Counted from the stretch's first letter, positions 1-42,115 are shown. The stretch: DNA of 64,000 nt from Oopsacas minuta (GCA_024704765.1 JAKMXF010000029.1:1-64000), one strand, 5' to 3'. Numbers and translations are program-made. Notes: generated by a model from the sequence alone, not told the origin.

Positions 1-718
1 CAATGAGAAGCAAGACATATTCATAGATTACCACCATTACAATACAAACATTACACATCAGTATTAGTTGTGGTTGTGGTGGTACTACAGCCATAATGAA
101 TAGGGCGATGAGACAGGAAAGTGAGATATATAACTCAAACTTTAAATTCAGTTGTGATTTGAAATAACTGTATTGATATACCATAAACTGTGTTAGAATA
201 CGAACAAATAATGCTATAGAGTAGACAGATATTGTGGTTACAGCATACACCATGCGAGAGGCTGTCGACGTTACCAATCCTTGTAAATTATTGTAAGTTT
301 GTATTTGATTGTCAATGAATGCTAGCTTTTCGCCAAAATAATATTTTTTCAACCAAGTAGTGTTATAAATTCCTGATATTGCATAAAGTACCTGGAAAAC
401 GATTGAAATTGTAAATCCAATCTCACTCAAACATATAGCTAAGAGGAAAATATGTTTTATTCTGTTTGTCCTAAAATTTTGCATCTCGTTGAGCTTCACA
501 TGTTCAGGTCGGCTGTTAACTAGTTTAGAATTCAATTTCTCTTTTCTGTCATCTTTCATCAATTTATGAATTAAATATATTGCCCATGAACTGGAGAATA
601 TCAAAATAAGTATAAAGTTTAGGAAGAATATTGGCGCAAAAATACTATTAATTTCGTTTATACGAGACAAAATTATGTAATTATAATGTTTTTGGGATGT
701 AGTGATGCTACTGTTCAT
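1..718 (-). CDS. Orphan 7-TM family member, subfamily A; 5' part only, runs off the window edge
   Basis: ATG at 718-716 with an open frame to position 1 (MNSSITTSQKHYNYIILSRINEINSIFAPIFFLNFILILIFSSSWAIYLIHKLMKDDRKEKLNSK...YEYVLLLI). Colinear with ORFs 21887-23068 and 35789-36976. Probably missing from the ORF track because its stop lies outside the window. Confidence 0.9.
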   Translation of the reverse strand, partial: MNSSITTSQKHYNYIILSRINEINSIFAPIFFLNFILILIFSSSWAIYLIHKLMKDDRKEKLNSKLVNSRPEHVKLNEMQNFRTNRIKHIFLLAICLSEIGFTISIVFQVLYAISGIYNTTWLKKYYFGEKLAFIDNQIQTYNNLQGLVTSTASRMVYAVTTISVYSIALFVRILTQFMVYQYSYFKSQLNLKFELYISLSCLIALFIMAVVPPQPQLILMCNVCIVMVVIYEYVLLLI

Positions 719-992
719 TTCTTGTGTATTATAGTTGATATCTTTTCTCATATATATACTATATTCTCCAACAGTCAGTCCCCTCTCTGATTACTCAATT
801 AGTAAATGCTCATTTCTATCAACTGATCATCCTATGCTAACTGCCTACTTAACTATCTGATATAATATCCAAACCATTTCTAACTATTTCCCTGGATATT
901 TATCTCAAAATCTCGGGATTTAATTTCCCTGGATTTCTAATGTTATCTATATTATTATATTATTAACGCAATCAATGTGATGTAAGTATATA

Positions 993-1378
993 TCTATATA
1001 TTCCTATGTTTATTTGTCCAGAATTGATTGAAGAAACTGGAAGATCCCCAGAGCAGATTTTTGGCATAGAGGGGAGGGGTACTTTGGGCATGGCTCGAAC
1101 AAATTCGAGTCTTGGACAAAAGTTCAAACCTATGACGAAATTATGACGTAATTGTCACCTTTTTGGAATTCCGAAATATCACATTAAGGGCCACTGCTCA
1201 GCCAATATACATGAAAGAAATTCTGACGTCATCATATTGAACACTTGAAGATTCATCTTGAAATTATTACGTCATCATTACTATATAAAATCAAGAAATT
1301 TTGTTTAATACTTAAGCTAATCGGAGGCGCTAAGCTCTCGAGCAGCGACCTAGTAAGCGAAGTGCGCAACAGCACAAG
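993..1378 (+). mobile_element. Short non-autonomous Helitron-like repeat (family A)
   Basis: Starts TCTATATATT..CCTATGTTTATTTGTCCAGAATTGATTGAAG and ends in a GC-rich GCGAAG-containing segment followed by CACAAG|T. The core recurs at about 13400-13620 (-), 15520-15790 (-), 21240-21540 (-), 27120-27350 (+) and 52975-53200 (-). The Helitron class is inferred from terminal structure only. Confidence 0.6.
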
Positions 1379-1495
1379 TATCAAATAATATGAATATTTC
1401 ACTATTATATCAAAACATTGCTATAAATAATCAATTATCGACTATTTCCCTTGATTAGTCATTATTACCTAGATACCATGTTAAATCCAGGTCTC

Positions 1496-2271
1496 CCGGT
1501 GTAACAGCCTAGATTAACCTCCCAACCCAGTTTAACCCCGGGTATAATCAGGGCTAGCCTAAATTAATCCCAGGTATAAACTGGGATAGCCCAGATTAAG
1601 CCCCTGGGTTAAGCTAGGCTAGCTCAGATTATACCCTCGCAAGGGGTTAATCTGGGCTAGGCTAGTTTATACCCAGGGGGTTAGTCTAGGATAGTGATTT
1701 TCAACGGGGTCCACTTGGCCCCCCTGGGGAGGATTATGTTTTAGGAATATCCACCAGACTCTTGGGTCACTGACCACTCAAAATCGATTCACCTAGTCAA
1801 ATAATTTCGACTTAACCTGGTTCAGTACTTGGACAAATATTTATATTATCTAACTAAATATTATTGATCAAACACATCCAAACAAAGAAGTATTCTGAAT
1901 AATAATACTTGTTCGGTAACATTATTCACTGTTCAGTTTGTTAATATCAAATATCATATTTTATACATTATTTGTTATATATTTTGGATGTTATACGTAG
2001 TTCTATTCAAAAAGCCAAAACTAAAATTTTCAATTGTTTGTTTGGTAGACTAACTGAAAATTAATCATTACTATTACAAAAATTAAGGTATAATGATGAT
2101 TCAAAGATAGGGAGCCAGAGGCTATGGAAGAACCTGGGGGTCGCTAAGGGAGGAATGCAATGTCGGACGTTGAGAAACACTAATCTAGGCTCAGAAGGTA
2201 TAAAGTAGCCTAGGCTAGTTTATACCTTGGGGTATATTCTGGCGGGGGGTTAATTTGAGCTGCTACATCGG
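1496..2271. mobile_element. MITE-like element with imperfect TIRs and internal CTAGGCTAG/CTGGGCTAG subrepeats
   Basis: Left CCGGTGTAACAGCCTAGATTAACCTCCC versus reverse complement of right CCGATGTAGCAGCTCAAATTAACCCCCC. A related end lies at about 11410-11580. No clear TSD. Confidence 0.5.
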
Positions 2272-5807: not shown

Positions 5808-5951
5808 CTAGGGCGTAACTAGCATTGAGGCAGAGGAGGCAGTTGCCTGCTCGCTTTTCGGGCGTTCCCTCATCTCTCTATTGTAATCGCCATTATTTAG
5901 GCAAATATCCATCCTTGCCTCCTCGCTCTGGGATATCTAGTTACGCCCCAG
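5808..5951. mobile_element. MITE
   Basis: TIRs CTAGGGCGTAACTAG and CTAGTTACGCCCCAG. TSD not evident. Confidence 0.6.
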
Positions 5952-6134: not shown

Positions 6135-6974
6135 TCAAGATGTTTTAGCCAAACAATTCCCTGTTAGTTTTGTTTGTATAGGTGCTGGGATACATGTTAT
6201 TGTACTGTTCCAACTGGTACTTCTACAAACAAGACTTCCACTTCTCATTTGAGTTAAGCAGATTATACAAAATATATGGTTACAAAAATCGCATTTTATC
6301 TCATTACACCCGGATTCATGCTCAAGTAAGGAACAACAGTTAGGACAAGCCCTTACTTGAGGAAACCTCACGATATTACCATCTCTGTCTTTGAACTCCT
6401 TCATTGGGGAAGATTTTAGTTGTTTGATCTTCTCTTTACTACAAAACTCGTTACCACAGTTTACTAGGCCATTCCACTCTCCAAGACAATACCAGCAGAA
6501 GCGAAATGGTTTTATCGATGTTTTTGTGCAAACAATACAAGTAACTTGAGGATCATCAGGTTTTATACGTTGAGTGTAACTTTGGCATCTGGGACACTGT
6601 TGTATATCCTGACTTAGACAAGCGTTGACTGAGAGTGCAGTTGTTAGAAATTGCTTTTCTTGCTCATCAGGTAGTCCAAGTATTAATATATCATCAACAT
6701 CGAGTAGAGTTGTGCAGGAAGCACAGCTAATTTTGTGTTTTAGATTGTTTATTTGTTGCCAAGCATGATCAAGTATATCATCTGGACAGATGTAATGTCC
6801 GCATTTCAACCTCAGCCCCCCTTCATCTGAACAGATACAGCACTCTCCATTAGGATGAGGAAATGTTACCGTCCTAGTCTCATCTCTGAGCCCAATGAAG
6901 AAATCACAGCCAACTCTAACATTACACAATGGAACATTCAGAACCTCTAAGGCGCACCTTGTTGCTCCTGACAT
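6135..6974 (-). CDS. RBR (RING1-IBR-RING2) E3 ubiquitin ligase, copy 1; possibly the last exon of a Ubl-RBR gene
   Basis: RING1 CCIC..CGHYICPDD..CASC, IBR CPRC..CIVC..FCWYC..CGNEFC, RING2 CPNC..HESGCNEIKCDFCNHIFCIIC with the catalytic Cys in GCN. AG acceptors lie immediately 5' of the ATG. Confidence 0.92.
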   Translation of the reverse strand: MSGATRCALEVLNVPLCNVRVGCDFFIGLRDETRTVTFPHPNGECCICSDEGGLRLKCGHYICPDDILDHAWQQINNLKHKISCASCTTLLDVDDILILGLPDEQEKQFLTTALSVNACLSQDIQQCPRCQSYTQRIKPDDPQVTCIVCTKTSIKPFRFCWYCLGEWNGLVNCGNEFCSKEKIKQLKSSPMKEFKDRDGNIVRFPQVRACPNCCSLLEHESGCNEIKCDFCNHIFCIICLTQMRSGSLVCRSTSWNSTITCIPAPIQTKLTGNCLAKTS

Positions 6975-7420
6975 GCTAACTTTTAAATATCAAACAATCA
7001 TTATAATTCAATACACCGTGTTTCCCTGAAATAAGCGTCGGGTGTTCTCTTTCAAGAAATACATAAGCGCTGAGGCGCTTATTCAGGAAATACAGAGCAT
7101 ACAGTAAACTTACCTTACTGATGTCATATGTCATAGAAGGTATCATTATAGCAAGGGTCTAATGTTGAAAGCCATATAGGCTGAATCTGTGAGGGAGGGA
7201 GGGGTACAGCCGCAAGAAATACTTTGGGAAACTTGGTCTCGAGAAGCTAATTGCTTCATGCAAATTGGTCACGGGACCAATTATGTAGCAGGAGTACAAT
7301 GGAATGCTTTAGAGTAGTGTGTGAAAATAATATTTTCAATTATTTGAAGAATGGTGGGGATATATGTCTATATTATGTAAACAATAGTATATCACTACCA
7401 TATACTAATTGATAACGTCA

Positions 7421-7612
7421 TCACATACCTCCTGGTAGTCGTATTACCAGCATTATTGTACTATTATTAGTAATCCCATAATCTTGTGCATTCATCACAA
7501 ATCCATTTCTCATTTCTTCAAGCTGTTTACCAGCATACAACAAACGTTGGTGTTCTACTTTAATTCCACACTTAGCAGAAATGTCACTCTTTAGTTTTCC
7601 AATAGTGTAAAC
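7421..7612 (-). CDS. Ubiquitin-like domain exon (Ubl-1) ending in RLPGG-M-stop; N-terminal exon unresolved
   Basis: After acceptor tattttag (phase 0): VYTIGKLKSDISAKCGIKVEHQRLLYAGKQLEEMRNGFVMNAQDYGITNNSTIMLVIRLPGGM*. Aligns to ubiquitin ...[37 protein letters not shown]. 192 nt. Not in the ORF track. Confidence 0.9.
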   Translation of the reverse strand, partial: VYTIGKLKSDISAKCGIKVEHQRLLYAGKQLEEMRNGFVMNAQDYGITNNSTIMLVIRLPGGM

Positions 7613-9129
7613 CTAAAATAGCAAACGCTACATTCATGACAGTATCAGCTCATCCATTATTTTAGACATTAAACAAAAACAAGAATTCGTCTTATGCATG
7701 GATTCATACCAATAAATTCATTGGTCGCACAATTATCTTTGTTTTTCAGAGCGACACTAACATACTTGCCGACTTGAGTGAAGAACAAAAGAGGGACATT
7801 ACGGGATGTTGCATTTTTACAATAGACGGACTACAAAAAAATCGGGATAATTGTGGTTTTTGGCAAGTTTCAACTGGACATTAGCCTCTAAACATGTGGG
7901 AAAAGGCGGGAAAGTCGGCAAGTATGCCATAAAATTATTGTGAAAAAAAACAGAGGACAAAAATAGAGTATTGAAATTGGGTAGGTAATTGGATAAGTTA
8001 TTCTAACTGGTCATATGAGATTGTTAGATTAGTTAGGTTTCTAGTTTCTTACCTTCAATTCTCCCTTTTCGATGTTAATGGTATACACCTTTGTGCTCAG
8101 TCCCAAGATAAATATTGTGTCCATCTCCATCTTTAACTTTATTCAATATTTTAGGTAAATACTCTTGAAAAATCTAAGTAGTAAGTAGTACTCTTAAATC
8201 AGAAGATTAAATTAAGCCAAATGGAGCGTATAATAATTCTTTTTTTGCTCCTCATAAAGTGTGAGTGTTTGTTACGATATATTTCATTAATATTTGTCTG
8301 GTTTACTATTTTATCCGATCAAATGAAATAAATTTGTGTTGTTCAAATTCATAAATAGATGAGAGAGTTCGGAATACATATATATGTCCAAATATTACGA
8401 ATCAGAACTATGAATAAAGGTGTTAACTCCAAAGCTTCAAAGATATTTGCGGATTACATATTTTGTGGTTGACATGATTATCCTCTATATTATTAAACTC
8501 AATTTGTGTGCTTTGTCTTCTTATTATTATAATGATGGGGAAGATGATCTGCGTATAACATAGGGAATAACATACCCTTCTGTTTACGATATAGGAAGAG
8601 TATACAATTACATTGGGGTAATCGAGTATGCTGATTCCGATCTTCACACTTTCGAATTAATCATATGTAAATTTATTTGTTGTTTTTATGAATATTAAGT
8701 AAACAAATTGTTGAAATATTAATTTATTAACCAATTATTTAGTAAATCATCTACTTTGAAGGGGTACTCTGGGCTCGTCAAATTATTGGGGGGCGAAATG
8801 AGACTCTCGCCCTCCTTAGAAAGTATTGGAGAGGCGACCGCCCCCCTTGTCCCTCACTAGCAGTTGAAACCAAAACTCTAGCATCAATTTGAAAAATGCG
8901 AAAAGGTGTGAAATCTTGTAGCTAGAGATTTGAAAATGTTAAATTTGAAATATACATACTCGATTAGCCCTTACTAGCAGTTGAAACGAATCACTAGTAT
9001 TATTTTAGAAATAAGGTGTGAACTCTACGCACCCAATTACTCCTGACAACATGTTGAAACCTCCTAATCTCTATCTTGCTTCTGAATTTACATAGAAAGG
9101 TGTGAAAATATGATTAATCCCAAAAAAGG

Positions 9130-9296
9130 TGTGAAATATTCGCTTTAGAAATTCATACCAGAGGTGCAAATCTTCGACCCAAGATTATTTATTTGTGTAC
9201 CAATTTTCATGTTAATTGGACCACTAAATTTCCTGGAAGGACGGACGTCGCATATCGTCCAATGCCATTAGGGCATCTCCCTATAGGAGCTAAAAT
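9130..9296 (+). mobile_element. Non-autonomous Helentron-like repeat end (family C)
   Basis: The terminal motif GCCATTAGGGCATCTCCCTATAGGAGCT preceded by GGAC-type short repeats recurs at about 12560-12830 (-) and 56520-56795 (+). Class assignment is an inference. Confidence 0.45.
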
Positions 9297-9584
9297 TAAG
9301 GCGCGTAAAACCCTGGAACATTTATACGACTTATCACGATTGACAATTGCGTGGCTCAATACCAGAGGAGTAGACAAGGTGGCACAAATGCGCCACCTAT
9401 TTGTTACATTCCTCCTATTTCGCTGCACTTCTACCAAACATGCGCCAGTAATCTGCCAAAGCTGTCTACTCCACTGCTCTATACTATTATTATTATATTA
9501 AATCCCTAGCAAATTGACAAAACATTTTGATAATAAAAATTGATCAAACAAGATTAATCATTAAATTATAAGATGTGATACCAT

Positions 9585-10319
9585 CTATATGTAAAAGTCT
9601 GATTTTATACAACATAGACAAAAACATAGGCGAAATTTATTAGGATTACGTTTGGATTGATAGGGGATATCCACAATTGAATTGCCCTTCTGATAGTCAT
9701 CAGTAAAAGTTTGAACAGGCGGATCAGTATTCCACTTTTCATGTTCACTGTTGAGCTCGTGTTGTGACTGAATTTTCTCATTAGGATCAGACGGATATTT
9801 ATCAGGTTCTGAGCCACAGAAATTGGGGAACAGTCTACAAAAGTCAATATTCTTCAGGTTGAATTTATTACTGTCTAGAGCTAGCTGTTTCCTTTCGCTT
9901 TCACTAGCATCAATACTACCAATAGTATCTGTACACTCATGCATAAACTCATAAACTCCACGTAGAACTGCTGTCACTGAGTAAGCAGGTTTCCATTCTT
10001 CAGGATGAAAGTCACTCAGACTGAAACAGATTCTCTTATTCACTTTGAATCTTCCGTTAGGAGTCAGAAATAATATTTTAGGAGGGGCAAAAGGGAAGTT
10101 GGGAGGGAATACAAGCTTCCCATGATATACACCGTCCTCGTAGGGACTCTCCTTCTTACCCTGAATGGTAAAATGCCAATCTAGAATATCATCTTCATTC
10201 GGTGCTACTTGAATACCAGGAATTGGATCTGACAGAATCAGTTTTATATCTCGATTCAGTCGCTTTGTTGCTCGAGACAGGTGGTATTGTAATCTACACT
10301 CATCATCTGTCATGTACAC
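9585..10319 (-). CDS. Ubiquitin-conjugating enzyme E2, UBE2J/Ubc6 family, intronless
   Basis: ATKRL..D; ILDWHFTIQGKKESPYEDGVYHGKLVFPPNFPFAPPKILFLTPNGRF; active-site region RICFSLSDFHPEEWKPAYSV, typical of UBE2J1/J2/Ubc6 (PNGRF in place of HPN). Confidence 0.92.
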   Translation of the reverse strand: MYMTDDECRLQYHLSRATKRLNRDIKLILSDPIPGIQVAPNEDDILDWHFTIQGKKESPYEDGVYHGKLVFPPNFPFAPPKILFLTPNGRFKVNKRICFSLSDFHPEEWKPAYSVTAVLRGVYEFMHECTDTIGSIDASESERKQLALDSNKFNLKNIDFCRLFPNFCGSEPDKYPSDPNEKIQSQHELNSEHEKWNTDPPVQTFTDDYQKGNSIVDIPYQSKRNPNKFRLCFCLCCIKSDFYI

Positions 10320-13300
10320 GATGTACTAATGGAAAAGCAAGCACTATTGTTAACCCGCCATAAATAGTGCAACTTTTTGTAATTGTTGAATTCACATAGT
10401 AACATGCAACATTATTGCATCGTGGATGATGGTTTGAGAAGTACTGAAGTGTGTAATACAGTCAGTAATACTCAGTGTGTTAAAAATTAAGAAGTCCATT
10501 TCGCGAATAACATAAAACCATAATTATTGGGAAAGATAATTAATATATGCTCTTATAAAAGTAAAATCTCACGCCATTTTAATGAAGAGATGCTAATTCT
10601 TACTCCTTTTTAGGAGAAATCTCACGGCTTGGTCAGACGCCGCACCAGGTTGGCATATGTGATCACCTGATGACCAATTTTTCATCATTCTAATCACGAA
10701 TATTATATGTACTACCAGGGGCGTAACTATGGGAGGTGTCTCCCAATTTTTGAACATGAAACATTCTTACTTATAGGATGTGTTGTGTCAAATATGCATA
10801 GGAATCAACCAACAAGTTTATTATTACGCCACTAATGTTTTGAAATCTCAAGACTCAGTATGCTTGTTTATTAAATTCCCTGCACATTGGATATTTCTCT
10901 GAGCATTTTTAGAGAGATCGAACCTTTTGATTGGCCGATATTTCGCTCGTAATATTAATTTAGAGAGAAATATTTGTGTCCAGTTATACCCTGGAGTAAG
11001 AAATAATACAATTGTTCGTACTTTTCAATTTGATATTCAAAGACCAAAAGGAAGGAAATATCAAAGATTCAATTGGCCCCCTCATTAAGTGATGTGCTAC
11101 TCCAATATTTTCATTTTGTTACGCCTCGTGGACCACCTATCAGCTGGATAACTACCTCCCTCTAGCTAAGAGATCGACAATTAGAGAGGAAAATGTTTCT
11201 AGGCGGAATTACTTGGCCTTTTATCTGGGTGCGCCCAGAGCACCTCCAGAGATGTTGCTCAGAGTGTTACTGCTTGCTCTGGGTGTGATTGCATTTTGAG
11301 AAATAATTTACAGAAATAATTCGAATTTTTAAAATTTCGTAATACAAGCTATCGCTACAAATGTTGATCACTTGGAGTTTATGGATTATACCTTGTATAT
11401 TCTGAACTAGCCCACTTCATATCCAGGGGGTATAATCTGTCCTAGGACACAATAACCTCGGGTATATTCTGGCCTAGCCCAGACTATACCTGGGGTTAAT
11501 TTAGTCTAGCCCAGATTACCTCCATAGGGAGGGGGTGGTTAATCTGGGTGGGGAGGTTAATCTAGGCTGTTACACTGGGAGTGTCACATCCCGGAAATTA
11601 GGCACACTGGTAAATGAGTCAGCAGCAAATATTAAATTTCTTCAGAAAACTCTCCGTTTAGTTACATGGATTAGGGAAGCACAAATTTTATGCATGAAGC
11701 CACAATATTGAATGATTATTCGATCACTATTAGCACTAGCGCATGATACTGCTAATTGGTTTCACACTTCTGCTGTCAAGTGTGTGCCTATATATCAACG
11801 GTGCATACAGCTTACATTGAATTTTCATTTCGCTATATAAAGGTGAAATTCAAACAAATGCTTGACCATCATGATTCAATATTCTGTGATTTACAAAGCC
11901 AAATATGCAACAAACCACTAGTTTGAAAATCTTCAAGAAAATTATTTGTTCCGTTCCTTGAATTATTGACTATAAATAACTGCTAACCTAGTACCTATGA
12001 AGAAATGTATACCTTTGTTCCTCTAATAGAGCTTGAATTATTTGAATAATGGATAACATCTACATTTCTGGAATGGAGGGAAAGTCTAAAGTATTACATA
12101 TTGAAACACAAAAGATTCAGGTACGTGTACGTAATAACTATTCATGTACTTCTAAACTACCTGATCATTCAACTCAGGCTGCCTCTATACCAAGTTAGGC
12201 GAGTGTGGTCAGATTTGTTGTCCTTCCTGGAAAATATCATATGGTTGAACGTGAATTCCAGTTTGGTTAATTGTAGAAACTACTAGAAGGTAACTAATGG
12301 TTGTACTGTTTACTGTGTGAACGGTGTAAACTAACTCGTAGCTCTTTTACATATATTTGTGTCTACATGCATTTCCATCAGACGAACATTACGAACATCG
12401 CATCATTCTTTTGTAAATAAATACTACGTATCCGAATTGGATTCACAGATTATCTCTGTTTTAGGGCTTTTGAAGCGAATTTCATGATGGGTTAAAAAGT
12501 TTTTCGAATTAATTATATTGATTGCTCTAATTTTGCAATTTGGATTTGTTTCATTTTTAGTACAGCTCCTATAGGGAGATGCCCAACGGCATGTAAGAAG
12601 TCCGACATCCATCCACACGGCCATACGAAATCTATCAGTCTGATTCACATGAAAATGTGCACAAACATACATTTAGGTAGGAAATTTGCACCTCGGTTAT
12701 AATTTTTCCTAAAGTAAATATTCACACCTTTTAGTGATTAATCATATTTTCACACATTTCTATATACAATTCAAAAGCATGATAGAGATTAGGTTTCAAC
12801 ATGTTGTCAGGGGTAATTGGGTGCGTAGAGTCTGATTTTGAGATTTCGAGAGTCTGAAAGTTACAAATTCACAGATTTATCATATGAATAATCATATTTT
12901 CACACATTTGCATATTATTCAAAATCATGCTAAATATTTCGCTTTAACTATAAGTAAGGGGTAATCGAGTATGAAGATTCCAATTTTGACATTTTCAAAT
13001 CTATATCTAAATGATTTATCATATGATTAATTATATTTTCACACCTTTTTGCAAATTATTCAAAATCTTTTAACTGCTATTAACCGATTATGGCGCCAAA
13101 GTGTTACGTTCGTGATGAGAAGGAACACTAACATTTTACCACTTCGTTTTAACCAATTCCCGCGCCAAAAACGAGATTTAGTACCTTTTGACGTCATAAA
13201 ATCACTCATTTTCTGGCAGTATTCGGTTAATAGAAATTCAGAGGCGAAATCTCTGCTGTCCAAACAATTTTACAAAACCTACTCCTGTCCGATTCTTACC

Positions 13301-13690
13301 TGAAAACCCGTTAATTGGGACTTTTTCTTAAATTTCCCTAGAAAATTGCCAGAATTTTATATTCATTGTTTTAGAATTTTATTAGAAATATATTATTAAC
13401 TTGCGCGCTTCGCTTGCTAGGTCGCTGCGCGACACCTTAGCGCCTCAGGTTAGGTTAAGAAACAAAAAGGGTGATAATGATGTCATAATTTCGTCATAGG
13501 TGTGAATTTTCGCCCAAGACTCGAACTTGTCCGAGCCAGGCCCAAAATACCCCTGTATGCCAAAAAAGCCTTGAGGGTCTTTCAGTTTCTTCAATCAATT
13601 CAAACATGTATATTTATATACATGGATTAAGCAGTGGCGGACTACCCAATAGGCAAAGTATGGATTGCCTAGGGGCCAAAACCCCTAGTC

Positions 13691-13819
13691 CAGTGGTTTC
13701 CGACCTCATAGTGGTCCAACAGGATCTCAAACCTTGCATTATGGTCAATGGGAGGGGGTCCACAGTACATAGCCAATCTATTATAGGTGGTCCATGACTG
13801 AAAAGGTTGGGAAACACTA
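13691..13819. mobile_element. hAT (Charlie/Buster-type) MITE, 129 bp
   Basis: TIRs CAGTGGTTTCCGACC and GGTTGGGAAACACTA. Perfect 8-bp TSD CCCTAGTC at 13683-13690 and 13820-13827. Confidence 0.88.
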
Positions 13820-14888
13820 CCCTAGTCAATTGAAAACTATTCTTTTCGCTCTCCTCATGACTTACTATATTTACGGCTTGCTAATCAAATAATTACCAAA
13901 ATAATATACAACATTTCAATTTATCTAGTGTAACCAGAGGGTTTGGTCTTAATCCAGCAATAAGCACTTATTACAGTAAAACCTGAATACCTACACAATA
14001 TTCTTCCATGAGTATATGTATAACTCAGTGTTTAGATTATTTATTTAATTTGTCCTCTGCTACTGTTGTATGATAGTGATTTTTTAAAATAATTGAAGAG
14101 TAGTTCCGTGACTTAATAGACAATTCGATTCAGCGTACTTGAGATACGAGATATACCTATACTGGCTGTGTTGCTGTTTAGAGCATATATTTTGAAATTT
14201 GGGTAATTTGTTTTCTTTATTTTCATATAAATTACAATAAATTTACATATGATTAATCCAAAAGTGTGAAAATCGGATTCAGCATGTTCGATATATTTAG
14301 TGAAATTTATTGAATTTTATTTACTTCCTTAATAAATACGATAAATACATAGTTATGCAACAATTTCAAAATTGCATACCGTAAATCCTTTCCTTGACAA
14401 CGGACAAACAAACAGACAAACAAAATTGAGATTTAATAATATATTCCACGGAAAGTTATTACATCCGAATAAACTGTTCGTTATCCACTTGGGAGACGTT
14501 GTTAACCCAAATGACTCTCATTGAGATACAATAGAACTTGGACGCGGACATAGTAAGTTAGCAAACGAAGTACGTCTTATCCGAATATTCTTCCTATAGA
14601 TACGATTAGTACAGTACTGGGATAGAAAATCCGATTTGGAGAAAGGTACGTACTAACCGAATGTACGTCTTAGCTGGTACTTACTAACTGAATTCTACTG
14701 TAGTAATTATATGTCACATCATTGATAACTTATGATGCAGACCTAAACTCCCAAATTTCTCTGATTTTCTGGGAAATTATCAAATGTTTTCATATAAATG
14801 GAACATTTCTATGCAGTGAGAGATCCACCTTTACAATTCAGATTTTTTGAATATCCTTAAATTCATGTGTTTGTTTCCTCTAATCTAG

Positions 14889-15092
14889 ACTTTTAAGATA
14901 AAGGAACTGAAAGTGAAGGTGAAAACAGTTACTGGGATTGATGTAGAGAAACAACGTTTGCTCTACGGCTCCAAAGATCTCGAGGAAAGTCATAATGGGC
15001 AAGTGATGACATTTGAAGACTATGGTATACATGCTGGTGCCAGTATCGTTCTGGTAGTTAGACTACCAGGTGGTAACAGATATTTTCACTAA
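14889..15092 (+). CDS. Ubiquitin-like domain exon (Ubl-2) ending in RLPGG-NRYFH-stop; N-terminal exon unresolved
   Basis: After acceptor ctaatctag (phase 0): TFKIKELKVKVKTVTGIDVEKQRLLYGSKDLEESHNGQVMTFEDYGIHAGASIVLVVRLPGGNRYFH*. Ungapped alignment to Ubl-1 with the same intron position. Not in the ORF track. Confidence 0.9.
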   Translation, partial: TFKIKELKVKVKTVTGIDVEKQRLLYGSKDLEESHNGQVMTFEDYGIHAGASIVLVVRLPGGNRYFH

Positions 15093-16310
15093 CTTAGATT
15101 ACTGACATACTTATAATATCTTCCATTATTAGTATTTTGTTCACATCCTGAAAGTTATTACATATAATTTGATCGGACTGATCAATTAGTAATTAGAGCT
15201 GTTTAATTAAACGCCTTCGCTTGTTTGGTCGCTGCCTGCCAGTTTGTGTCTCAGAATTATTTTAAGTGTGAAGCAGATAAATTTCTTAATGATTTTAGTC
15301 GCTACACGATGGGATATACTCAGTAGTACGTCCTACGTGCCTCGAGTTAAAAATTAGCGGAAATTTTAATTTTATTAACTATGGTCAATCCAATTACATT
15401 TAATAGCCTTCTGCCGTAAGACTGGAGCTGCGTGGCTTTTGGTTAGTAATCTGGGCATTTCGTGCTTCGAGTATTATGAAATTCTATAATCTTGAAATTT
15501 CGGAAAATGTAATTTTCATGGTGGCGTAATAATCCATAATGTCATGGCATTTAGCATATTGATGGTCCTGAGATTTCAAATTTGAAATTCTTATGATGTA
15601 TATTGATGAACAGTGGCTAAGCAGTGGTTAATATGTGATTTTTCGAAATTTTAAAAGATGACAATGACTTCATAACTTTGTCATAGGTGTGAATGTTCTT
15701 CCAAGACTCGAATTTGTCCGAGCCAGCCATAAATACCCCTGTATGCCAAAGATCAGCCCTGGGGCCTTCCAGGTTCTTCAATCAATTCTGGAATTACAAA
15801 TATATACAGTTGGAATAAATGGAGCACTTTTATAAGCGGGGAATTTTGAGTTCACATTCATTCATTTTCATAGAAACGAACCTCTCTAAGCTAGAAGTGG
15901 GGAACAGGGCATACTTTAGAGATAATTATGTCTCATGCCTTTGAAATTTACCTCTATAAAAGGGGAATTCTACGCTACAATTTCTTGAATATTCAATTTT
16001 TGAGCTAGATTTGGAAAAAATTCATGTATTTTAGTATTTTCGCTATGATGAAAACATCGTTGGGTTTCTCAGTAGAAAATTTCTTATAATTTTGGATTTT
16101 CAACGAACTACCTTAGGGCATATTAGAATGCCTAATGTAAGTCGATGAAAATCCAAAACCAGCCCTGGGGTCTTCCAGGTTTTCAATCAATTCCGACATA
16201 CAAAAATACACAGTGCAGCCTCTATAAGGGGCCTCTATAAATGGAGCACTTTTATAAGCGGGGAAATTTTAGTCTACATTCATTCATTTTGTATCTTCTG
16301 ATTACTAGCT

Positions 16311-21855: not shown

Positions 21856-21886
21856 AGAAAAAGAAATCAACTGTAATACACAAGAA

Positions 21887-26019: not shown

Positions 26020-26237
26020 AAGTTCAGTTCGGCTGTCACGTATTTCAGAATTCAATTTCTCTTTTCTGTCATCTTTCAGCAATTTACGGATTGAATATAT
26101 TGCCCATGAACTGGAGAATATTAAAATAAGTAGAAAGTTTAGGAAGAATATTGGCGAAAAATACTATGAATTTTGTTTATATGAGGCAAAATTTTATTAT
26201 TGTAATGTTTTTGGGATGTAGTGATGCTACTGTTCAT
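26020..26237 (-). pseudogene. Truncated, frameshifted 5' fragment of a subfamily A 7-TM gene
   Basis: ATG at 26237 (MNSSITTSQKH...), a 1-nt deletion around 26155, and homology lost after about 70 codons. Retains the upstream region (26238-26520, similar to 719-1000). Confidence 0.85.
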
Positions 26238-28053: not shown

Positions 28054-29210
28054 TCACATTTTCATTCTGTAAGCTGTATTGTTTCTTTCAATCAAACGTT
28101 TGAGAGAAGATCTGTTAGAAGAAATATTGTTATTCAGCTTAATACGATGATAAATGCTCCGAAATGTCCTGCGTAGAGAAACAGTCAAATAGAGTAATAT
28201 CTGTATGTTAGTTCCTAGTATTAACAAAATTATTTCTATTGTGTTAACGTATGAAAGAATATTATAAATAGTATCAGCCTCATTATGTGTCCAAATGTTG
28301 GAATCTTCAACCAATTTCATAATAACTGGATTGATACAGTAGATGGAGAAACCCAAATATTGAGCAAAGAATGCTATTAACATAACAATTGATCCTTTCT
28401 TATAATCATTGTATACTGTTTTGTAGTAGAGTATTACAGTTTTAGATTGGTTTTCATGTTGAATTGCATCAGAAAGTCGTTGTTTGAGTAAAAGACACAA
28501 TTTTCTACTTACAATGAGAAGCAAGACATATTCATAGATTACCACCATTACATATCATTATTAGTTGTGGTTGTGGTACTACAGCCATAATGAATAGGAC
28601 GATAAGACAGGAAAGTGAGATATATAACTCAAACTTTAAATTCAGTTGTGATTTGAAATAACTGTATTGATATACCATAAACTGTGTTAGAATACGAACA
28701 AATAATGCTATAGAGTAGACAGATATTGTGGTTACAGCATTCGCTATACGACGAATCTTTGAGTGTATCAAAAGATCTAACGGAATGTAACTATTTATAT
28801 TTTCTGAATTGTATACTAGTTGTATTTGAGGCCAGAAATGTTGCAACCCAATCTCTGATAATTTTTTAAGATAAAAAATTACAATATAAATCACAACGGA
28901 GACGATTGAAATTGTCATTGTAATTTCACTCAAACATATGGCCAAGAGGAAGCTATGTTTTATTCTGTTTATTTTGAAATTCGGCATCCCATTTAGCGTA
29001 CATTTTCAGGTCGGCTATTCCATTCAGCTTCATTTTCCTCTCTTTTGCAATTTTTCTGTAATCTATGAATTAAACATATTGCCCATGAAGTCGAGAATAT
29101 TAGAATAAGAGTGAAATTTAGATAGAATATCAACGCGAAAGTGGTACTAACAAGAGAGTATATTCTGTAGCCATAAAGTTTCTGGATAATTTCCTCACTA
29201 GTTTTTGAAT
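28054..29210 (-). pseudogene. Subfamily A 7-TM pseudogene
   Basis: No in-frame ATG found at the expected position near 29210, a 1-nt deletion at about 28998, and a 14-nt deletion between CATTAC direct repeats at about 28550. ORF pieces 28532-28987 and 28054-28548 match the paralogues. Confidence 0.88.
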
Positions 29211-35788: not shown

Positions 35789-36976
35789 ATGACCAAAAGC
35801 AGCGAAACAATTCCTCAAAAACCCTATGACAAGATATTTTTCTCTCTCACAAACAAAATTAGCAGTATTTTTGCCAGTATATTCTATCTCAATTTGATAC
35901 TTATTTTGATATTCTCCAGTTCATGGGCAATATATTTAATTCATAAATTGATGAAAGATGACAGAAAAGAGAAATTGAATTCTAAACTAGTTAACAGCCG
36001 ACCTGAACATGTGTGGCTCAATGAGATGCAAAATTATAGGACAAACAGAATAAAACATATTTTCCTCTTAGCTATATGTTTGAGTGAAATTGGAATGACA
36101 TTTTCAATAATTTCCCAGTTGATTTATAACGAAGTTTCAGAAATTTATTTCATTCAAAGCACTACAGGGTATGGGATGGAATATTTAGGGGATCAGCTAG
36201 TATATATTACAGGATATGTACATGCTTACGGTCAAATTGATAGTTTGGTAATGAATACAATCCCTCGTATAGCGCTTGCTGTAATCACAATATCTATCTA
36301 CTCTATAGCATTATTTGTTCGTATTCTAACACAGTTTATGGTATATCAATACAGTTATTTCAAATCACAACTGAATTTAAAGTTTGAGTTATATATCTCA
36401 CTTTCCTGTCTTATCGTCCTATTCATTATGGCAGTAGTACCACAACCACAACTAATAATGATGTGTAATATTTGTATTGTAATGGTGGTAATCTATGAAT
36501 ATGTCTTGCTTCTCATTGCAAATAGAAAATTGTGTCTTTTACTCAAACAACGGCTTTCTGATGCAATTCAACATGAAAACCAATCTAGAACTGTAATACT
36601 CTACTACAAAACAGTATACAATGATTATAAGAAAGGATCAATTGTTATGTTAATAGCATTCTTTGCTCAATATTTGGGTTTCTCCATCTACTGTATCAAT
36701 CCAGTTATTATAAAGATAGCTAAAGATTCAATCATTTTGACAGCTAATGAAGCTCTAACTCTCATAAAAATTGATTCGTATGCTACAAAATTAGAATTAT
36801 TTCCTTTAATACTTGGAACTAGCATACAGATATTGCTCTATTTGACTGTTTCTCTACGCAGGACATTTCGGAGCATTTATCATCGTATTAAGCTGAATAA
36901 CAATATTTCTTCTAACAGATCTTCTCTCAAACGTTTGATTGAAAGGAACAATGCAGCTTACAGAATGAAAATGTGA
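35789..36976 (+). CDS. Orphan 7-TM family member, subfamily A, intact and intronless (395 aa)
   Basis: Seven hydrophobic segments. Long stretches are identical to 21887-23068, and it shares that gene's 3' flank. Confidence 0.9.
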   Translation: MTKSSETIPQKPYDKIFFSLTNKISSIFASIFYLNLILILIFSSSWAIYLIHKLMKDDRKEKLNSKLVNSRPEHVWLNEMQNYRTNRIKHIFLLAICLSEIGMTFSIISQLIYNEVSEIYFIQSTTGYGMEYLGDQLVYITGYVHAYGQIDSLVMNTIPRIALAVITISIYSIALFVRILTQFMVYQYSYFKSQLNLKFELYISLSCLIVLFIMAVVPQPQLIMMCNICIVMVVIYEYVLLLIANRKLCLLLKQRLSDAIQHENQSRTVILYYKTVYNDYKKGSIVMLIAFFAQYLGFSIYCINPVIIKIAKDSIILTANEALTLIKIDSYATKLELFPLILGTSIQILLYLTVSLRRTFRSIYHRIKLNNNISSNRSSLKRLIERNNAAYRMKM

Positions 36977-37641: not shown

Positions 37642-38769
37642 ATGGGGTCTGTGTTACATCATTTTAACTCTCCAAATATCGGAAAAGATATTATTTATAT
37701 ATTTCAGGTAATTACATCACTGTTATTTTCCGCAATTTTTGTATTAAATATAATTTGGTGTGGTTACTATTGCAATCACTGGCTGATTGTTAGAAAGAGA
37801 ATAAAATATTTGAAACAACAGACATGCGAAACGGAATTAGAAAAACTGCGAAACAGTAAAGTTGATTTTGTGAAGTCAACTTTCATTATTCTAATCTCAT
37901 TATGTGAGATAGTATCAATCTTAGTAATTCCAGTTACTATCCTAGCAAGGGATGCTGCAATTAGTCAGAATTTACGCGTTATGAACGGGGAAACTTCTTT
38001 ATCAAATTGTAGTGGAGAAAAATCACCAATTCTATTTCAAAATCACACTTATAGAATATTAATCTCGATTTCTGCTTATTCATTTATTAATATATTTTGG
38101 CTAATTATTGGACTCAATTCATACCTTTCAAAGGCATACAGCACAAGAAGGAACATTAAGTACTCAGAACCAATAGTTTGGGTAGGATTAACAGTAACTA
38201 CTGCATTATTATTAATCATAGCTTCTTACTGGAAAATTTTTATCATCTTCTTACCACTTACACCAATAATTCCTATTATACAATTTGTAGTCATGTATAA
38301 ATCAACGAGAAAGGTCTACGAAAATATCAGGCGAAGAACATCGGACTCATGGTTCGAGAATAGAGAAGATTTCATCCGGTTAGAGAGAATGGGAAAAGCT
38401 TACCTAAGTGGATCGAATGGAATATTAACTTTTCTTTTCTTGGCTATAGTAACCTCTTTGTATACAATATTTGCAGAATATTACAAATTGCTACTAACAT
38501 CAAATTCCGTTCTCAAGGAATCACTAAATACACGCTATAGTTTTGTAGAACTATGCTCGAGAAATTCACGGGTTTTTGAGTTGACCTTTACATTTAATGA
38601 ATTCATGAATATATTACTTCCATTCTTATGCAGTTTTATACTGTTTATCCTGCATCTGTTAATCTTGAAGGAATGTATTATAAGAATATTGAAGAGACGG
38701 AAATTATATAAATCAGCAGAAGGAAGATTTAATCATGAAATTTACCAACCATTGATTGGAGAGAAATAA
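37642..38769 (+). CDS. Orphan 7-TM protein, subfamily B, intronless (375 aa)
   Basis: Seven hydrophobic segments. Shares with subfamily A the W-x-x-Y at the end of TM1, L-[SC]-E-[IL] in TM2, and basic RRRTSD in the TM5-TM6 loop. Confidence 0.85.
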   Translation: MGSVLHHFNSPNIGKDIIYIFQVITSLLFSAIFVLNIIWCGYYCNHWLIVRKRIKYLKQQTCETELEKLRNSKVDFVKSTFIILISLCEIVSILVIPVTILARDAAISQNLRVMNGETSLSNCSGEKSPILFQNHTYRILISISAYSFINIFWLIIGLNSYLSKAYSTRRNIKYSEPIVWVGLTVTTALLLIIASYWKIFIIFLPLTPIIPIIQFVVMYKSTRKVYENIRRRTSDSWFENREDFIRLERMGKAYLSGSNGILTFLFLAIVTSLYTIFAEYYKLLLTSNSVLKESLNTRYSFVELCSRNSRVFELTFTFNEFMNILLPFLCSFILFILHLLILKECIIRILKRRKLYKSAEGRFNHEIYQPLIGEK

Positions 38770-38854
38770 CTATTACTATAATGTGTATTTTTGAATACAT
38801 ATTTCATATTAAGAAAAGTGTTTTCTCTGTGTTTGATAATTATCGCCTTGAAAT

Positions 38855-39420: not shown

Positions 39421-39616
39421 TGTATATTCAAATAAGTTTGTTCGTAGTTAGGGCATTAATATCGTGCGATTATTGATCGCACGATGACATTGGAGATCTG
39501 CCTTTGACGATCGGAGGATGATCGCCCATCATTTTCCCCTAAAATTGGACTTTTTGTATAATTGACATTTCATATAGTGGATATCTCTTAATTTCGCAGT
39601 CCTTGGATAAGTGAAG

Positions 39617-39840
39617 CCAGGAATTAAGTCCATTCCTAATACTGGAATAGGTCTTAATTCCCAATCGGAGTCAATCAACTCTGTGAATTAAGGAATTAAG
39701 TCCAATCCCACACATTCCTAGAATATGACTTAATTCCTGGGTTGCCGTGAGAATGGGAATTCCCATATTGAAAAATCCATGGGAATTTCCACAGAAATCC
39801 TGTGGGATTGGGAATTGAAATTCCGTTCCTACGGCAATCA
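39617..39840. mobile_element. Two abutting small MITEs
   Basis: CCAGGAATTAAGTC...GACTTAATTCCTGG followed by TTGCCGTGAGAATGGGAATT...AATTCCGTTCCTACGGCAA. Confidence 0.6.
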
Positions 39841-40327
39841 TACTAAATTCCAATTCGCAGTTATTTAATTTCGTGACTTCAAGGTTTAAGCCTTATTTCA
39901 ATTCAGAATGAGATTGTGACTTTAAACATAAATCTCAAATCAAGTCAGTAATTTAACTCAACAAAGTCCACTATGACGTAATGGTAATCGTAATCATGCT
40001 TATTATAATAAATTGGTGATGTGTAGTTTGAAATTTAGGATATGCGAAAAATTCATAGAATTACACTGCAATAGTGCGTATTTATATCAATTACAATCAT
40101 CCAGATTGAAATTCATAATTTATATCTTACGTGCTGTGCAGCTTGAGAATAGTTCGTGTTCGGGTAGTGCTCGGCACTTCGTGCCTCGAATATATTCTAA
40201 GAACAACAAAAATTTATAATACGTTTTTGAAATAGCATATTTGGAATCAGCAACCCCGAAAACCCCAATGTAATTGTTTACCATACCTAAATCGCCAACA
40301 AAGGATATTTACTCCATAAATTATATA

Positions 40328-40411
40328 CAGTCGAGTCTCGTTAATACAAACACTGTTAAGGAGTACGAATTTTGTCAGTCCCCTGGTGTACGTATTAACG
40401 AGAATCTATTG
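40328..40411. mobile_element. pogo/Tigger-like MITE, 84 bp
   Basis: CAGTCGAGTCTCGTTAATAC ... GTATTAACGAGAATCTATTG, flanked by TA. Confidence 0.75.
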
Positions 40412-41032
40412 TATAGTATATCGATCTAGCAAAATCAACTTTTTTCATTTATTGATTTTGTAAAACAGTGTGTACAACTAATCAACAAAAAGCAGATCCC
40501 CAGACATCTATAAGCCTATAGAATGCTCTTTCTAACATCAACTACAAATTACAAACACACTGGACCTCTCTATAGAGTCTTACGAATCGACATTTGACGA
40601 ATTCGACATAGCATTCCATTTCCCTTTTACTTTAATACAAATCGGACGAACTAACAAACAAACACCAATTGAGTTTTAATAATAGATATAGACTTAGTTA
40701 TTTTATTGACTTTGCAGCTGTACTATCATTGTAATTGTAATCCTAATCGTGGTCAATTAAAAGTAATTGGGCCCAACCTTGGAGCGAAACAGTTTTGTCT
40801 TGGCATCTTGGTTGTTCAATGAAATGCATGTCTATGATAAAAGATGATGAATTGATCATAATTTATTTTGCAAATATTAGATACAACACTAATTAGTCTC
40901 ATTCAAAGATAGAATACAAACTATTACTTAAGTAATTACATCAATTTAACGATATCGTTGGAAAGAAATACAAAATACGTAATACAGTTTTGTTCGTATT
41001 AATACCATGCTTTAAATACATATCTTAACCTA

Positions 41033-42115
41033 TCAATTTACTAGAGGTTCCAGCATTAATCTCCCGGAGAAAGATCTCTCAATATGGTACCTATGAGCAT
41101 AACGATATTCGAACAGAATCTTATTACAGAAGTATACCAGAGAGTAGATTATGAGAGTAGGTACGAACATGAGAAGTGTGCAGAAAAGGAATGATAGAAT
41201 TAGATAGAACATGATGGTTACAGTGATATTGAAGGCAGGGGATTTGATAACGGTGCTATTCCCTAGGTATGTATGTTCTAGAATGCAAGGCTCAGTTACC
41301 AGAGACAAGGGTAGATAAATGAAGAATCCTGATAGTATATAAAGTATCAGAGGAATACCACACAGTATAAACCAAATTATGAATCTTTTGAATTGTTTAG
41401 TACTGTGAATGAACTCTTTTGTTGTAGAATCATCTTCTCCATTCATATACTTTAAATCATCGCATTTCATCCGTAGAATAATAAATAAACGATTTGTATT
41501 CATAACCAATCTTACATACATTATTAGCATTATCGTAATACTTATGATATGTGCTAGTATGGTGCCTACCCCTGATAATGTCAATACAACTATGAGTACT
41601 GAGAATTTTATTACCTGTTTCACCTGATATCTCAGTTTGTGTTCTTGATTGCTGGTCGAGTAAAATCGAATATGGTAGCGAACTAGGATGTCTAGAAGTA
41701 GTAAAGTTAGAGTATAGCAATACACGGATAGGACATTACCAATGACTACATGTGAATACAACCTGGCAATCCTGTAGAATATCGCGCAATTCACAGAGAT
41801 ATACGAGTCAACTAATCGCCAAAGTATGTCTCCAGCAAAATGCAATGACCCTATCATAAGTTCACTCAATGTTATGCCCATGAATATCTTTAACCTTCTG
41901 TCATCGTGTCTGTAATTCTTTAGGATGTTAACAGAGTCTGAAATATCATCTGAAACATATACCCTCTCCAATGTGCTCATTTTCTTTCTCAAATCACGGA
42001 TTTTAATATACAAATAGCCTAGCCATGGAATCTGCATTATTACTTGGAATACAATTAATATACTCGCAATAAAGTAACCTATTTTGTATGCTTCAGGGTA
42101 GAGAGGAAAATCCAT
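41033..42115 (-). CDS. Orphan 7-TM protein, subfamily C, intronless (360 aa)
   Basis: About seven hydrophobic segments. Motifs PWLGY (TM1 end), ITLSEL (TM2), LRMKCDD (TM5-TM6 loop) and C-terminal PLV match subfamilies A and B. Confidence 0.85.
   Translation of the reverse strand: MDFPLYPEAYKIGYFIASILIVFQVIMQIPWLGYLYIKIRDLRKKMSTLERVYVSDDISDSVNILKNYRHDDRRLKIFMGITLSELMIGSLHFAGDILWRLVDSYISVNCAIFYRIARLYSHVVIGNVLSVYCYTLTLLLLDILVRYHIRFYSTSNQEHKLRYQVKQVIKFSVLIVVLTLSGVGTILAHIISITIMLIMYVRLVMNTNRLFIILRMKCDDLKYMNGEDDSTTKEFIHSTKQFKRFIIWFILCGIPLILYILSGFFIYLPLSLVTEPCILEHTYLGNSTVIKSPAFNITVTIMFYLILSFLFCTLLMFVPTLIIYSLVYFCNKILFEYRYAHRYHIERSFSGRLMLEPLVN

Follow-up and report, generated by a model that had tools for sequence, protein, structure and literature searches.

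A GPCR-shaped superfamily of putative receptors in Oopsacas minuta, a glass sponge

Results

Seven-transmembrane loci on one contig

The window studied here is a stretch of 64,000 nucleotides from the glass sponge Oopsacas minuta (GCA_024704765.1 JAKMXF010000029.1:1-64000). A preliminary description had placed in it a cluster of seven intronless seven-transmembrane (7-TM) loci belonging to three subfamilies, A, B and C. The window was searched by tblastn with the four intact proteins and the genome was searched in six frames; every one of the seven loci was recovered:

2-718, minus strand: A-type copy limited to codons 1-239, where contig C29 begins; tblastn identity to A1 is 80% across residues 1-239
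21887-23068, plus strand: A1, intact single-exon ORF of 393 aa with 38 homologues; predicted GPCR-fold 7-TM protein
26023-26237, minus strand: A-type remnant, codons 1-72 only, with in-frame stops; two tblastn pieces at 78-85% identity
28057-29208, minus strand: A-type pseudogene, nearly full length, in frames 0/1/0 with breaks near 28548 and 28997
35789-36976, plus strand: A2, intact single-exon ORF of 395 aa, 72% identical to A1
37642-38769, plus strand: B, intact single-exon ORF of 375 aa; the second subfamily of the superfamily
41033-42115, minus strand: C, intact single-exon ORF of 360 aa; the third subfamily

The claim of intronless loci stands for A1, A2, B and C. The cluster of seven, however, comprises four intact genes, the rest being one truncation at the contig edge and two wrecks. 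Since the copy at 2-718 reaches the contig start, its truncation reflects the assembly edge rather than demonstrable decay. The locus at 26023-26237 is a dead 5' fragment of subfamily A. The pseudogene at 28057-29208 was recovered as three tblastn pieces (28551-28057, 28996-28547 and 29208-28999) and includes two separate ORFs, 164 and 151 aa long; the frames of the pieces imply two frameshifts. Between the family loci lie transposon remains and an E2/RBR ubiquitin module that is unrelated to them; the sequence has 33% GC and is apparently intron-poor.

Orthologues and copy number

Each subfamily has full-length orthologues elsewhere, and thus the loci are not chance ORFs. Identities to these orthologues were 41-49% for A, 54-55% for B (which also has four paralogues in its own genome) and 57-79% for C, whose orthologues are each ~360 aa; C is the subfamily most conserved across species. 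An orthologue of B (P0053) and one of C (P0059) each lie on a 20154 bp contig, a possible hint of synteny.

A search with a combined profile found 59 matches in the O. minuta genome, corresponding to ~43 intact loci, and the superfamily has 428 cluster representatives in public data; the suspicion that the family is expanded was thus borne out by the genome-wide count. One member is deposited at NCBI as KAI6646545.1, annotated 'hypothetical protein LOD99_12666 [Oopsacas minuta]', and no description of the family was found in the papers searched. Among other 7-TM repertoires of the same genome, 7tm_2 (59 matches) and 7tm_3 (21 matches) are large; 7tm_1 gave two matches, with only 1-2 canonical genes.

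The three subfamilies share ancestry

Kinship of A, B and C had been set beforehand as a test of the proposed family. If the three were unrelated families of hydrophobic ORFs, then their likeness would reflect membrane-protein composition only. Consistent with this, pairwise BLASTP among them gave no significant match (the best had an E-value of 0.008 over 77 residues), and hhalign with narrow first profiles reached probabilities of only 36% for A-C and 17% for B-C, leaving C unlinked. The profiles were then broadened, each combining a subfamily alignment with distant own-genome paralogues. With the broadened profiles, probabilities rose to 98% for A-B (E = 1.9e-13), 96.5% for A-C (E = 7.6e-10) and 96.9% for B-C (E = 2e-10), in alignments of 239-323 columns running from TM1 to TM7. 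Reversed profiles, used as a control, reached at most 3.2%, while genuine 7-TM proteins of the same genome (alignments of ten 7tm_2 domains and of ten 7tm_3 domains) scored 0.2-1.6% against the A, B, C and combined profiles. Moreover, A and B were joined in plain BLASTP through intermediate paralogues, a single combined profile recovered all three subfamilies (each with E ≤1e-93), and the conserved residues are common to all three in identical order and spacing. Common descent is therefore established at the level of sequence profiles: A, B and C belong to a single homologous, old, intronless superfamily of ~360-400 aa proteins. Independent origins are very improbable and close to refuted.

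Conserved motifs and membrane topology

Across 169 members, the conserved positions include the TM1 Trp (91%), the TM2 Glu (95%), the Tyr at the end of TM3 (91%) and an Asp in the TM5-TM6 loop (84%); TM7 carries a lone Tyr in 62%. The motifs that characterize the family are W-x-x-Y, ICxxE, ILTxY....Y, SRKL...L..R..D and YK. Conservation concentrates on the cytoplasmic face, namely W-x-x-Y at the end of TM1, N...K on the TM1-TM2 hairpin, Y....Y at the end of TM3, SRKL...L..R..D after TM5 and YK before TM6. In addition, TM2 carries the conserved buried Glu, and the outward face is variable. Column frequencies revealed no DRY, CWxP or NPxxY; the lack of DRY and NPxxY agrees with the preliminary description. 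Also upheld were W-x-x-Y closing TM1 and the basic-x-x-D motif following TM5, both found in A, B and C, and the long basic loop following TM1, which has 36-48 residues including 9-11 K/R. The intramembrane Glu of TM2 holds for A2, B and C; A1, however, has Asp at this position.

The count of about seven hydrophobic segments was matched by hydropathy, which gave 6-7, and by an AF2 model of A1 with seven transmembrane helices. K/R-rich odd loops alternate with loops bearing N-x-S/T sequons (N-terminus, ECL1 and ECL3), in keeping with the GPCR-like N-out/C-in topology that had been proposed. The N-terminus has ~10-25 residues, ECL1 is long (~35 residues), as is ECL3, and ICL1 takes the form of a helical hairpin ~40 residues long. 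The TM4-TM5 loop (ECL2) is very short, with a median of 7 residues, and contains no Cys in 157 of the 169 members. ECL1 and ECL3 each hold one Cys in B, C and most of the distant members, a co-occurrence in raw counts, uncorrected for phylogeny; judging from the sequences, this pair could form a disulfide.

Sequence searches against known receptor classes

No Pfam match was found in the four window proteins or in 41 and 36 further family members at E-values up to 0.1-1, which places the 77 further members scanned outside known Pfam families, as the preliminary description required. Profile-HMM searches of the PDB with two family alignments (A1 and A4) returned no GPCR chain at E-values up to 10, and when the superfamily profile was compared by hhalign with the genome's own two 7tm_1-like genes, the probability was 0.3%. 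Membership in Rhodopsin class A (PF00001, 7tm_1) thus found no support from Pfam, the PDB profiles or hhalign. The class A disulfide between TM3 and ECL2 is likewise missing, given the length and Cys content of ECL2 described above. For the Adhesion/Secretin (PF00002) and Glutamate (PF00003) classes there was no Pfam match, and hhalign remained at the 0.2-1.6% of the controls. The ESM atlas was blank for A and B, with scores for B at chance level; language-model neighbours in the atlas came from Mucoromycota and Oomycota and from TOM1/THH1, GPR137 and PRRT clusters, and have the standing of leads only. In these sequence searches, the GPCR-shaped family matched no described receptor class.

Predicted structure

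The AF2 model of A1 (pLDDT 81.2, pTM 0.79) consists of seven long helices, with an unusually long and rigid TM1-TM2 hairpin and extended TM5-TM6, both of high pLDDT. In VIA-align, all of the best 50 rows (50/50) were GPCRs, the highest Z being 16.7 to BRS3 (rmsd 4.3 A over 261 residues); the tool itself notes that Z-scores of 14-17 only modestly exceed what unrelated helical bundles can reach. No single class stood out, with A, B, F, T and adhesion tied. Foldseek against the PDB, a check proposed at the outset, gave the same picture: the top matches listed were all GPCRs, nearly all of class A, with a best E-value of only 3e-3. Other 7-TM folds were weighed as well, but insect OR/GR-type channels, PAQR proteins and microbial rhodopsins are absent from the top structural rows for A1 and were dropped as candidates. 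OR/GR and PAQR proteins also have an N-in topology, opposite to that of the family.

The model of C, for which seven close sequences were used, was poor (pLDDT 59.6). With this low-confidence model, 47 of the best 50 VIA rows were GPCRs at Z 9-11.5, and TMEM87A was among the matches; the fold search with C is suggestive only, and the GPCR fold of C is therefore deduced from its kinship with A and B. According to the models, the family has the ordinary GPCR seven-helix fold. The word "novel" in the preliminary description has to be tempered accordingly: the fold is not new, and lineage-specific orphan GPCR families are already known.

Mosaic evolution of subfamily A

Sliding nucleotide identity revealed A2 to be a mosaic in which blocks on the cytoplasmic side are almost unchanged and the outward loops are divergent: identity was 97-100% at codons 171-300 but fell to 44-70% in ECL1, ECL3 and the N-terminus. 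Among A paralogues, dS was low in the inward blocks (0.03-0.12) and higher in the outward parts (0.24-2.5), and dN/dS in ECL1 was 1.5-2.3, a range taken from three sequences over short segments with no statistical test. By these sequence measures, the inward half of subfamily A has been homogenized among paralogues, while its outward loops have diverged.

Discussion

We interpret the seven loci as one GPCR-fold superfamily of putative cell-surface receptors with a variable ligand face and a shared transducer face, a reading to which we assign a probability of about 0.6. The outward loops would bind different ligands, mainly through a surface formed by the long ECL1 and ECL3, and the shared inward face would engage one common transducer. 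Since eight G-alpha genes were reported in the O. minuta genome paper (PMC10280926), this transducer would most likely be a heterotrimeric G protein. The chemosensory or immune role put forward in the preliminary description is a candidate function only. Subfamily A, with its tandem copies, pseudogenes and diversifying ECL1, may serve as a fast-turnover set of sensors; C, and to a lesser degree B, may be conserved, single-copy receptors that respond to a stable and perhaps endogenous signal.

Several known systems resemble the family in part. Class A receptors (7tm_1, including the expansion in Amphimedon queenslandica) share with it the seven-helix fold (BRS3, GPR35 and MCHR1 at Z 16-16.7), N-out/C-in topology, intronless genes of ~370 aa, a buried TM2 acid, extended TM5/TM6 and lineage-specific tandem expansion. 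They differ in having the 7tm_1 signature, the DRY, CWxP and NPxxY motifs and the TM3-ECL2 disulfide, in place of which the family has its own motifs and an ECL2 of ~7 residues, and in having only a few residues where the family has its long ECL1 and ICL1 hairpin. TAS2R/class T receptors, nematode Sr receptors and flatworm PROF1-type orphan rhodopsins are likewise taxon-restricted, intron-poor and tandemly arranged with many pseudogenes, and have kept the fold while their sequences resemble the main GPCR classes weakly or not at all; the structural matches included TAS2R14 and a class T receptor (Z 14.6). No sequence relation to these families was detected. Their chemosensory roles are known or strongly inferred, and G-protein coupling is proven for TAS2R, whereas the present family is known from sequence and models and its host is syncytial, with no neurons or sensory organs. 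The 7tm_2 and 7tm_3 proteins of O. minuta have the same fold (FZD1, GIPR, PTH2R and ADGR chains scored Z 14-16 against the A1 model), but they are separated from the family by the hhalign controls and by large ectodomains, GAIN or Venus-flytrap, which the family, with its short N-terminus, does not have.

These comparisons bear on whether the family might be a hyper-divergent descendant of the sponge Rhodopsin-class expansion, drifted past sequence detection in hexactinellids, and no new class at all. In the demosponge Amphimedon, 126 GPCRs of the Rhodopsin family are detectable with Pfam and fall in sponge-specific clades (PMC4302439), against 1-2 7tm_1 matches and ~43 loci of the present family in O. 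minuta, numbers that would fit a replacement of class A. The predominance of class A among the top structural rows, the gene structure and length typical of many class A receptors, and the buried TM2 acid and TM7 Tyr, which recall D2.50 and Y7.53, point the same way. Yet the structural scores of classes B, F, T and adhesion tie with those of class A; the Pfam scan, the PDB profiles and hhalign all failed to connect the family to 7tm_1, and neither the activation motifs nor the disulfide is present. We consider a class A origin unlikely.

A different objection concerns signaling itself. The absence of the canonical micro-switches DRY, CWxP and NPxxY weighs against a receptor role, as does the long rigid TM1-TM2 cytoplasmic hairpin, which differs from G-protein-coupled GPCRs of known structure and, in the model, might prevent, or replace, G-protein docking. 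The proteins could instead be GPCR-fold molecules acting in trafficking, lipid handling or as scaffolds, like those of the TMEM87/GPR107 or TOM1/GPR137 type, with the cytoplasmic four-helix protrusion formed by the hairpin and the extended TM5-TM6 docking another partner. TMEM87A among the matches of the C model and the TOM1/THH1, GPR137 and PRRT leads would agree with such a role; however, Pfam showed no match to these families, and the atlas scores were no better than shuffled sequences reach. Furthermore, tandem expansion, pseudogene turnover and fast outward loops over a fixed inward face are typical of sensory repertoires rather than of housekeeping membrane proteins. A role apart from G-protein signaling is thus improbable, and receptors with a variable ligand face and a shared transducer face remain our preferred reading.

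A bolder version of the receptor reading is possible, if rather doubtful: the family may be a class-level new branch of the GPCR fold confined to glass sponges, replacing a near-absent Rhodopsin class as the main repertoire for sensing small ligands or microbes in a syncytial animal that has no neurons. Such receptors would signal through a conserved cytoplasmic platform of their own, made up of four helices from the TM1-TM2 hairpin and the extended TM5-TM6, and not through a DRY/NPxxY switch, with gene conversion holding the transducer face constant as the outward loops diversify.

How animal cell signaling began is a question in which sponges take a central place. Glass sponges are syncytial and conduct electrical signals, and to our knowledge Wnt is missing from them, together with many other core genes. 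Orphan GPCR families specific to one lineage are common, which tempers the significance of any one of them. If, however, the largest small-receptor repertoire of glass sponges lacks the canonical activation motifs, then Pfam-based surveys would undercount early-animal GPCRs, and the family would offer a natural way to test which components of the GPCR machinery signaling really requires. The mosaic of subfamily A would be a compact example of how a ligand face can be varied while one transducer interface is kept.

Seven receptor loci in a mixed neighbourhood

All seven loci that the preliminary description had placed in the window (G000:C29:1-64000; assembly of 61.46 Mb in 365 contigs, ~30–38% GC) were recovered by tblastn with the four long ORFs and by a six-frame search of the genome. 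Its picture of a cluster of seven intronless loci holds for the four intact ones, A1, A2, B and C, which are single exons, but the remaining three are a contig-edge copy, a pseudogene and a remnant. Subfamily A contributes five loci, two of them intact.

Receptor-family loci in the window
2-718, minus strand: A-type copy, ending at codon 239
21887-23068, plus strand: A1, intact, single exon, 393 aa
26023-26237, minus strand: A-type 5' remnant, 72 codons, contains stops
28057-29208, minus strand: A-type pseudogene, near full length, spread over three frames
35789-36976, plus strand: A2, intact, single exon, 395 aa, 72% identity to A1
37642-38769, plus strand: B, intact, single exon, 375 aa
41033-42115, minus strand: C, intact, single exon, 360 aa

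The copy at 2-718 ends at codon 239 solely because the contig begins there. Full-length relatives elsewhere match the intact lengths (B, 373–374 aa; C, 360 aa in most orthologues). For two ORFs on the window contig (75,650 bp) the recorded protein falls short of the full length, with 341 aa for P0001 versus 395 for A2 and 315 aa for P0058 versus 360 for C. Since the orthologues of C begin at the upstream Met of the ORF, the recorded gene model P0058 looks N-terminally truncated.

Other sequences interrupt the run of receptor loci, namely a UBE2-type E2 with an IBR/RBR gene on either side, a hAT-like fragment and what is left of a Mos1-type mariner. The IBR/RBR-type E3 ORFs (6135-6974, minus strand; 16311-17135, plus strand) bracket the UBC-fold E2 ORF (9585-10319, minus strand), and this group (6135-17135) sits between two receptor-family loci. 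The Mos1/mariner-type ORF (17975-18712, plus strand) has an HTH_48 match (E 6e-14) and a partial DDE domain, while the hAT-like RNase-H fragment (24265-24999, plus strand) is a weak match (E 0.008). These transposon remains may have had a part in how the A copies were rearranged and decayed. An intronless gene for an Erv26-family ER-export adaptor lies at 44766-45395 on the minus strand (Pfam E 6.8e-42). Over the next 18 kb downstream (45.4-64 kb), AT skew is positive and almost no ORF is longer than 110 aa; this stretch may be non-coding or contain an intron-rich gene.

Homology of subfamilies A, B and C

The best pairwise BLASTP match among A, B and C, between A2 and B, was non-significant (E 0.008), and hhalign with narrow profiles was equivocal (A–B 89.9%, A–C 36%, B–C 17%). 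Each subfamily has distant paralogues of its own in the genome, fifteen of which were retrieved. Several A-side and B-side paralogues match each other directly by BLASTP, for example L004 and L009 (E 1.6e-7). When the subfamily profiles were broadened with these distant own-genome paralogues, hhalign returned 98.0% for A–B (E 1.9e-13, 239 columns), 96.5% for A–C (E 7.6e-10, 321 columns) and 96.9% for B–C (E 2e-10, 323 columns). Reversed-profile controls gave at most 3.2%. As a harder control, we used alignments of ten 7tm_2 (Adhesion/Secretin) and ten 7tm_3 (Glutamate) TM domains from the same genome, against which A, B, C and the combined profile scored 0.2–1.6%. The failure of the controls beside the high scores of the broadened profiles makes the A–B–C link specific, and not an artefact of membrane composition. 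The kinship proposed in the preliminary description is thus borne out, and by profile–profile comparison A, B and C are one old superfamily.

A predicted GPCR fold with no sequence link to a described class

Neither the four window proteins nor the 41 + 36 family members had a Pfam match, in agreement with the orphan status first given to the loci. Profile HMMs built from alignment A1 and from A4 (the latter being the combined superfamily alignment) retrieved no GPCR among 177,635 PDB sequences at E up to 10, and the superfamily profile scored 0.3% by hhalign against the two own-genome genes resembling 7tm_1 (Rhodopsin, class A). Language-model neighbours were either eukaryotic clusters without names or chance-level matches. 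In these searches, sequence ties the superfamily to no described class.

The AF2 model of A1, built on a 34-sequence A alignment, has seven long helices (pLDDT 81.2, pTM 0.79). TM1, up to residue 64, and TM2, starting at residue 72, continue into a cytoplasmic helical hairpin with block pLDDT of 88–96, and TM5 and TM6 are likewise extended. The matches listed by Foldseek against PDB were all GPCRs, although weak (best E 3e-3, target-normalised TM-score 0.4–0.58). Among 48,161 representative chains, the best VIA-align match was BRS3 (Z 16.7, 261 residues, rmsd 4.3 Å); the best 50 were all GPCRs, and no more than about 2 Z units separate classes A, B, F, T and adhesion among them. Because helical bundles can reach Z ~13–14 through arrangement alone, as the tool itself cautions, the modelled match is good for a GPCR fold but assigns no class. 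The model of C is poor (pLDDT 59.6), and its best matches, mostly GPCRs at Z 9–11.5, are suggestive of the same fold. As modelled, then, the superfamily has a GPCR fold.

Conserved residues and topology

Across the 41 sequences of a superfamily alignment, W45 never varies, and E99, Y184, L244 and D254 each occur in at least 90%. Column shares were also taken from 169 full-length members.

Column shares among 169 full-length members aligned to the superfamily profile (A1 numbering)
TM1 end: Trp, 91%
Three residues past the TM1 Trp: Tyr/Phe, 81%
Loop after TM1: Asn, 78%
Loop after TM1: Lys/Arg, 93%
TM2: Glu, 95%
TM3 cytoplasmic end: Tyr179, 78%; Tyr184, 91%
After TM5: Leu244, 94%
After TM5: Asp254, 84%
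Before TM6: Tyr-Lys, 73% and 72%
TM7: Tyr, 62%

The TM1-end Trp and TM2 Glu, reported at the outset as shared, are thus widespread, but A1 carries an Asp in place of that Glu. The columns of the 169 aligned members show no DRY, CWxP or NPxxY, the first and last of which had already been noted as missing, and the TM4–TM5 loop is as short as described (median 7 residues), with Cys almost never present. ECL1 and ECL3 are ~35 residues each. Cys occurs in both loops in 73 of the 169 members, in ECL1 only in 16, in ECL3 only in 23 and in neither in 57; B and C have it in both loops, A1 and A2 in at most one. These raw counts, which ignore kinship, suggest an ECL1–ECL3 disulfide. Loops rich in K/R alternate with loops bearing N-x-S/T sequons, and the N-out/C-in topology first proposed from charge is therefore supported.

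Family size and distribution

The combined profile had 59 matches in the genome, which we read as ~43 intact single-ORF loci (350–430 aa) and ~10 decayed or partial ones. The family is thus expanded, as had been suspected, with at least ~43 intact loci. The same kind of search gave two matches for 7tm_1 (one above the cut-off), 59 for 7tm_2 and 21 for 7tm_3. In contrast to this almost missing 7tm_1 class, 126 receptors of the Rhodopsin family are detectable with Pfam in the demosponge Amphimedon (PMC4302439).

In a library of 1.84 billion proteins, the combined profile matched 428 cluster representatives at E ≤1e-3 and 231 at ≤1e-10. The cluster members examined came from ENA or Logan assemblies, plus one O. 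minuta entry; member P0193 is KAI6646545.1, "hypothetical protein LOD99_12666 [Oopsacas minuta]". Several A-type relatives share large contigs (for example, six on one of 1.27 Mb), so tandem arrays exist in other species too. Orthologues of B (P0053) and C (P0059) are each found on a contig of 20,154 bp, a hint that B–C adjacency may be conserved.

Within O. minuta, contig C233 begins with two further A-type copies, one intact with 83% identity to A1 and one partial (G000:C233:1410-8195), and the window cluster may continue onto it in the real chromosome. C-type paralogues and one further family member lie at 74433-75440 and 136297-139328 of C233. A separate tandem cluster of single-ORF 7TM genes (~367–379 aa; G000:C321:175886-187337) has weak 7tm_2 matches (23–32 bits) and, in one gene, a 7tm_1 match below the cut-off (26.9 bits). 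The superfamily profile does not match it, and its genes are apparently another divergent short-GPCR family.

Evolution of the inward and outward faces

C is strongly conserved (orthologues 57–79% identical, mean column identity 76%) and B moderately so (54–55%). Subfamily A is expanded, its nearest foreign relatives being just 41–49% identical, and has undergone tandem birth-and-death. A1, A2 and the paralogue L014 (G000:C233:7017-8195) are mosaics: nucleotide identity is 97–100% across codons 171–300, from the cytoplasmic end of TM3 through TM6, versus 44–70% in the N-terminus, ECL1 and ECL3 for pairs with A2. Among the three genes, dS is 0.03–0.12 in inward blocks, with 0.03–0.05 within blocks of codons 171–300, and 0.24–2.5 in outward blocks. 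The conserved blocks therefore reflect gene conversion, and not purifying selection alone. ECL1 dN/dS is 1.5–2.3 in all three A-paralogue pairs, a hint of diversifying selection on this loop. The inward face is fixed and the outward face variable.

Interpretation

We found no description of the superfamily in the full-text literature on Oopsacas, on Aphrocallistes, glass sponges and Hexactinellida, or on sponge GPCRs. The O. minuta genome paper treats G proteins and GPCRs only in brief (PMC10280926), and a 2025 survey of GPCR families in animal relatives used the O. minuta proteome solely for homologues of choanoflagellate families.

The superfamily may have arisen from the Rhodopsin expansion of sponges. 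Every test of class A membership that we ran came out negative. There is real room for non-canonical coupling, or for a role other than signalling, given that the canonical switches are absent and the predicted TM1–TM2 hairpin is rigid. We nevertheless favour the superfamily proteins as putative surface receptors. The ECL1/ECL3 face would bind ligands, and the common inward face would engage one transducer. As the genome paper reports eight G-alpha genes (PMC10280926), this transducer would most simply be a G protein.
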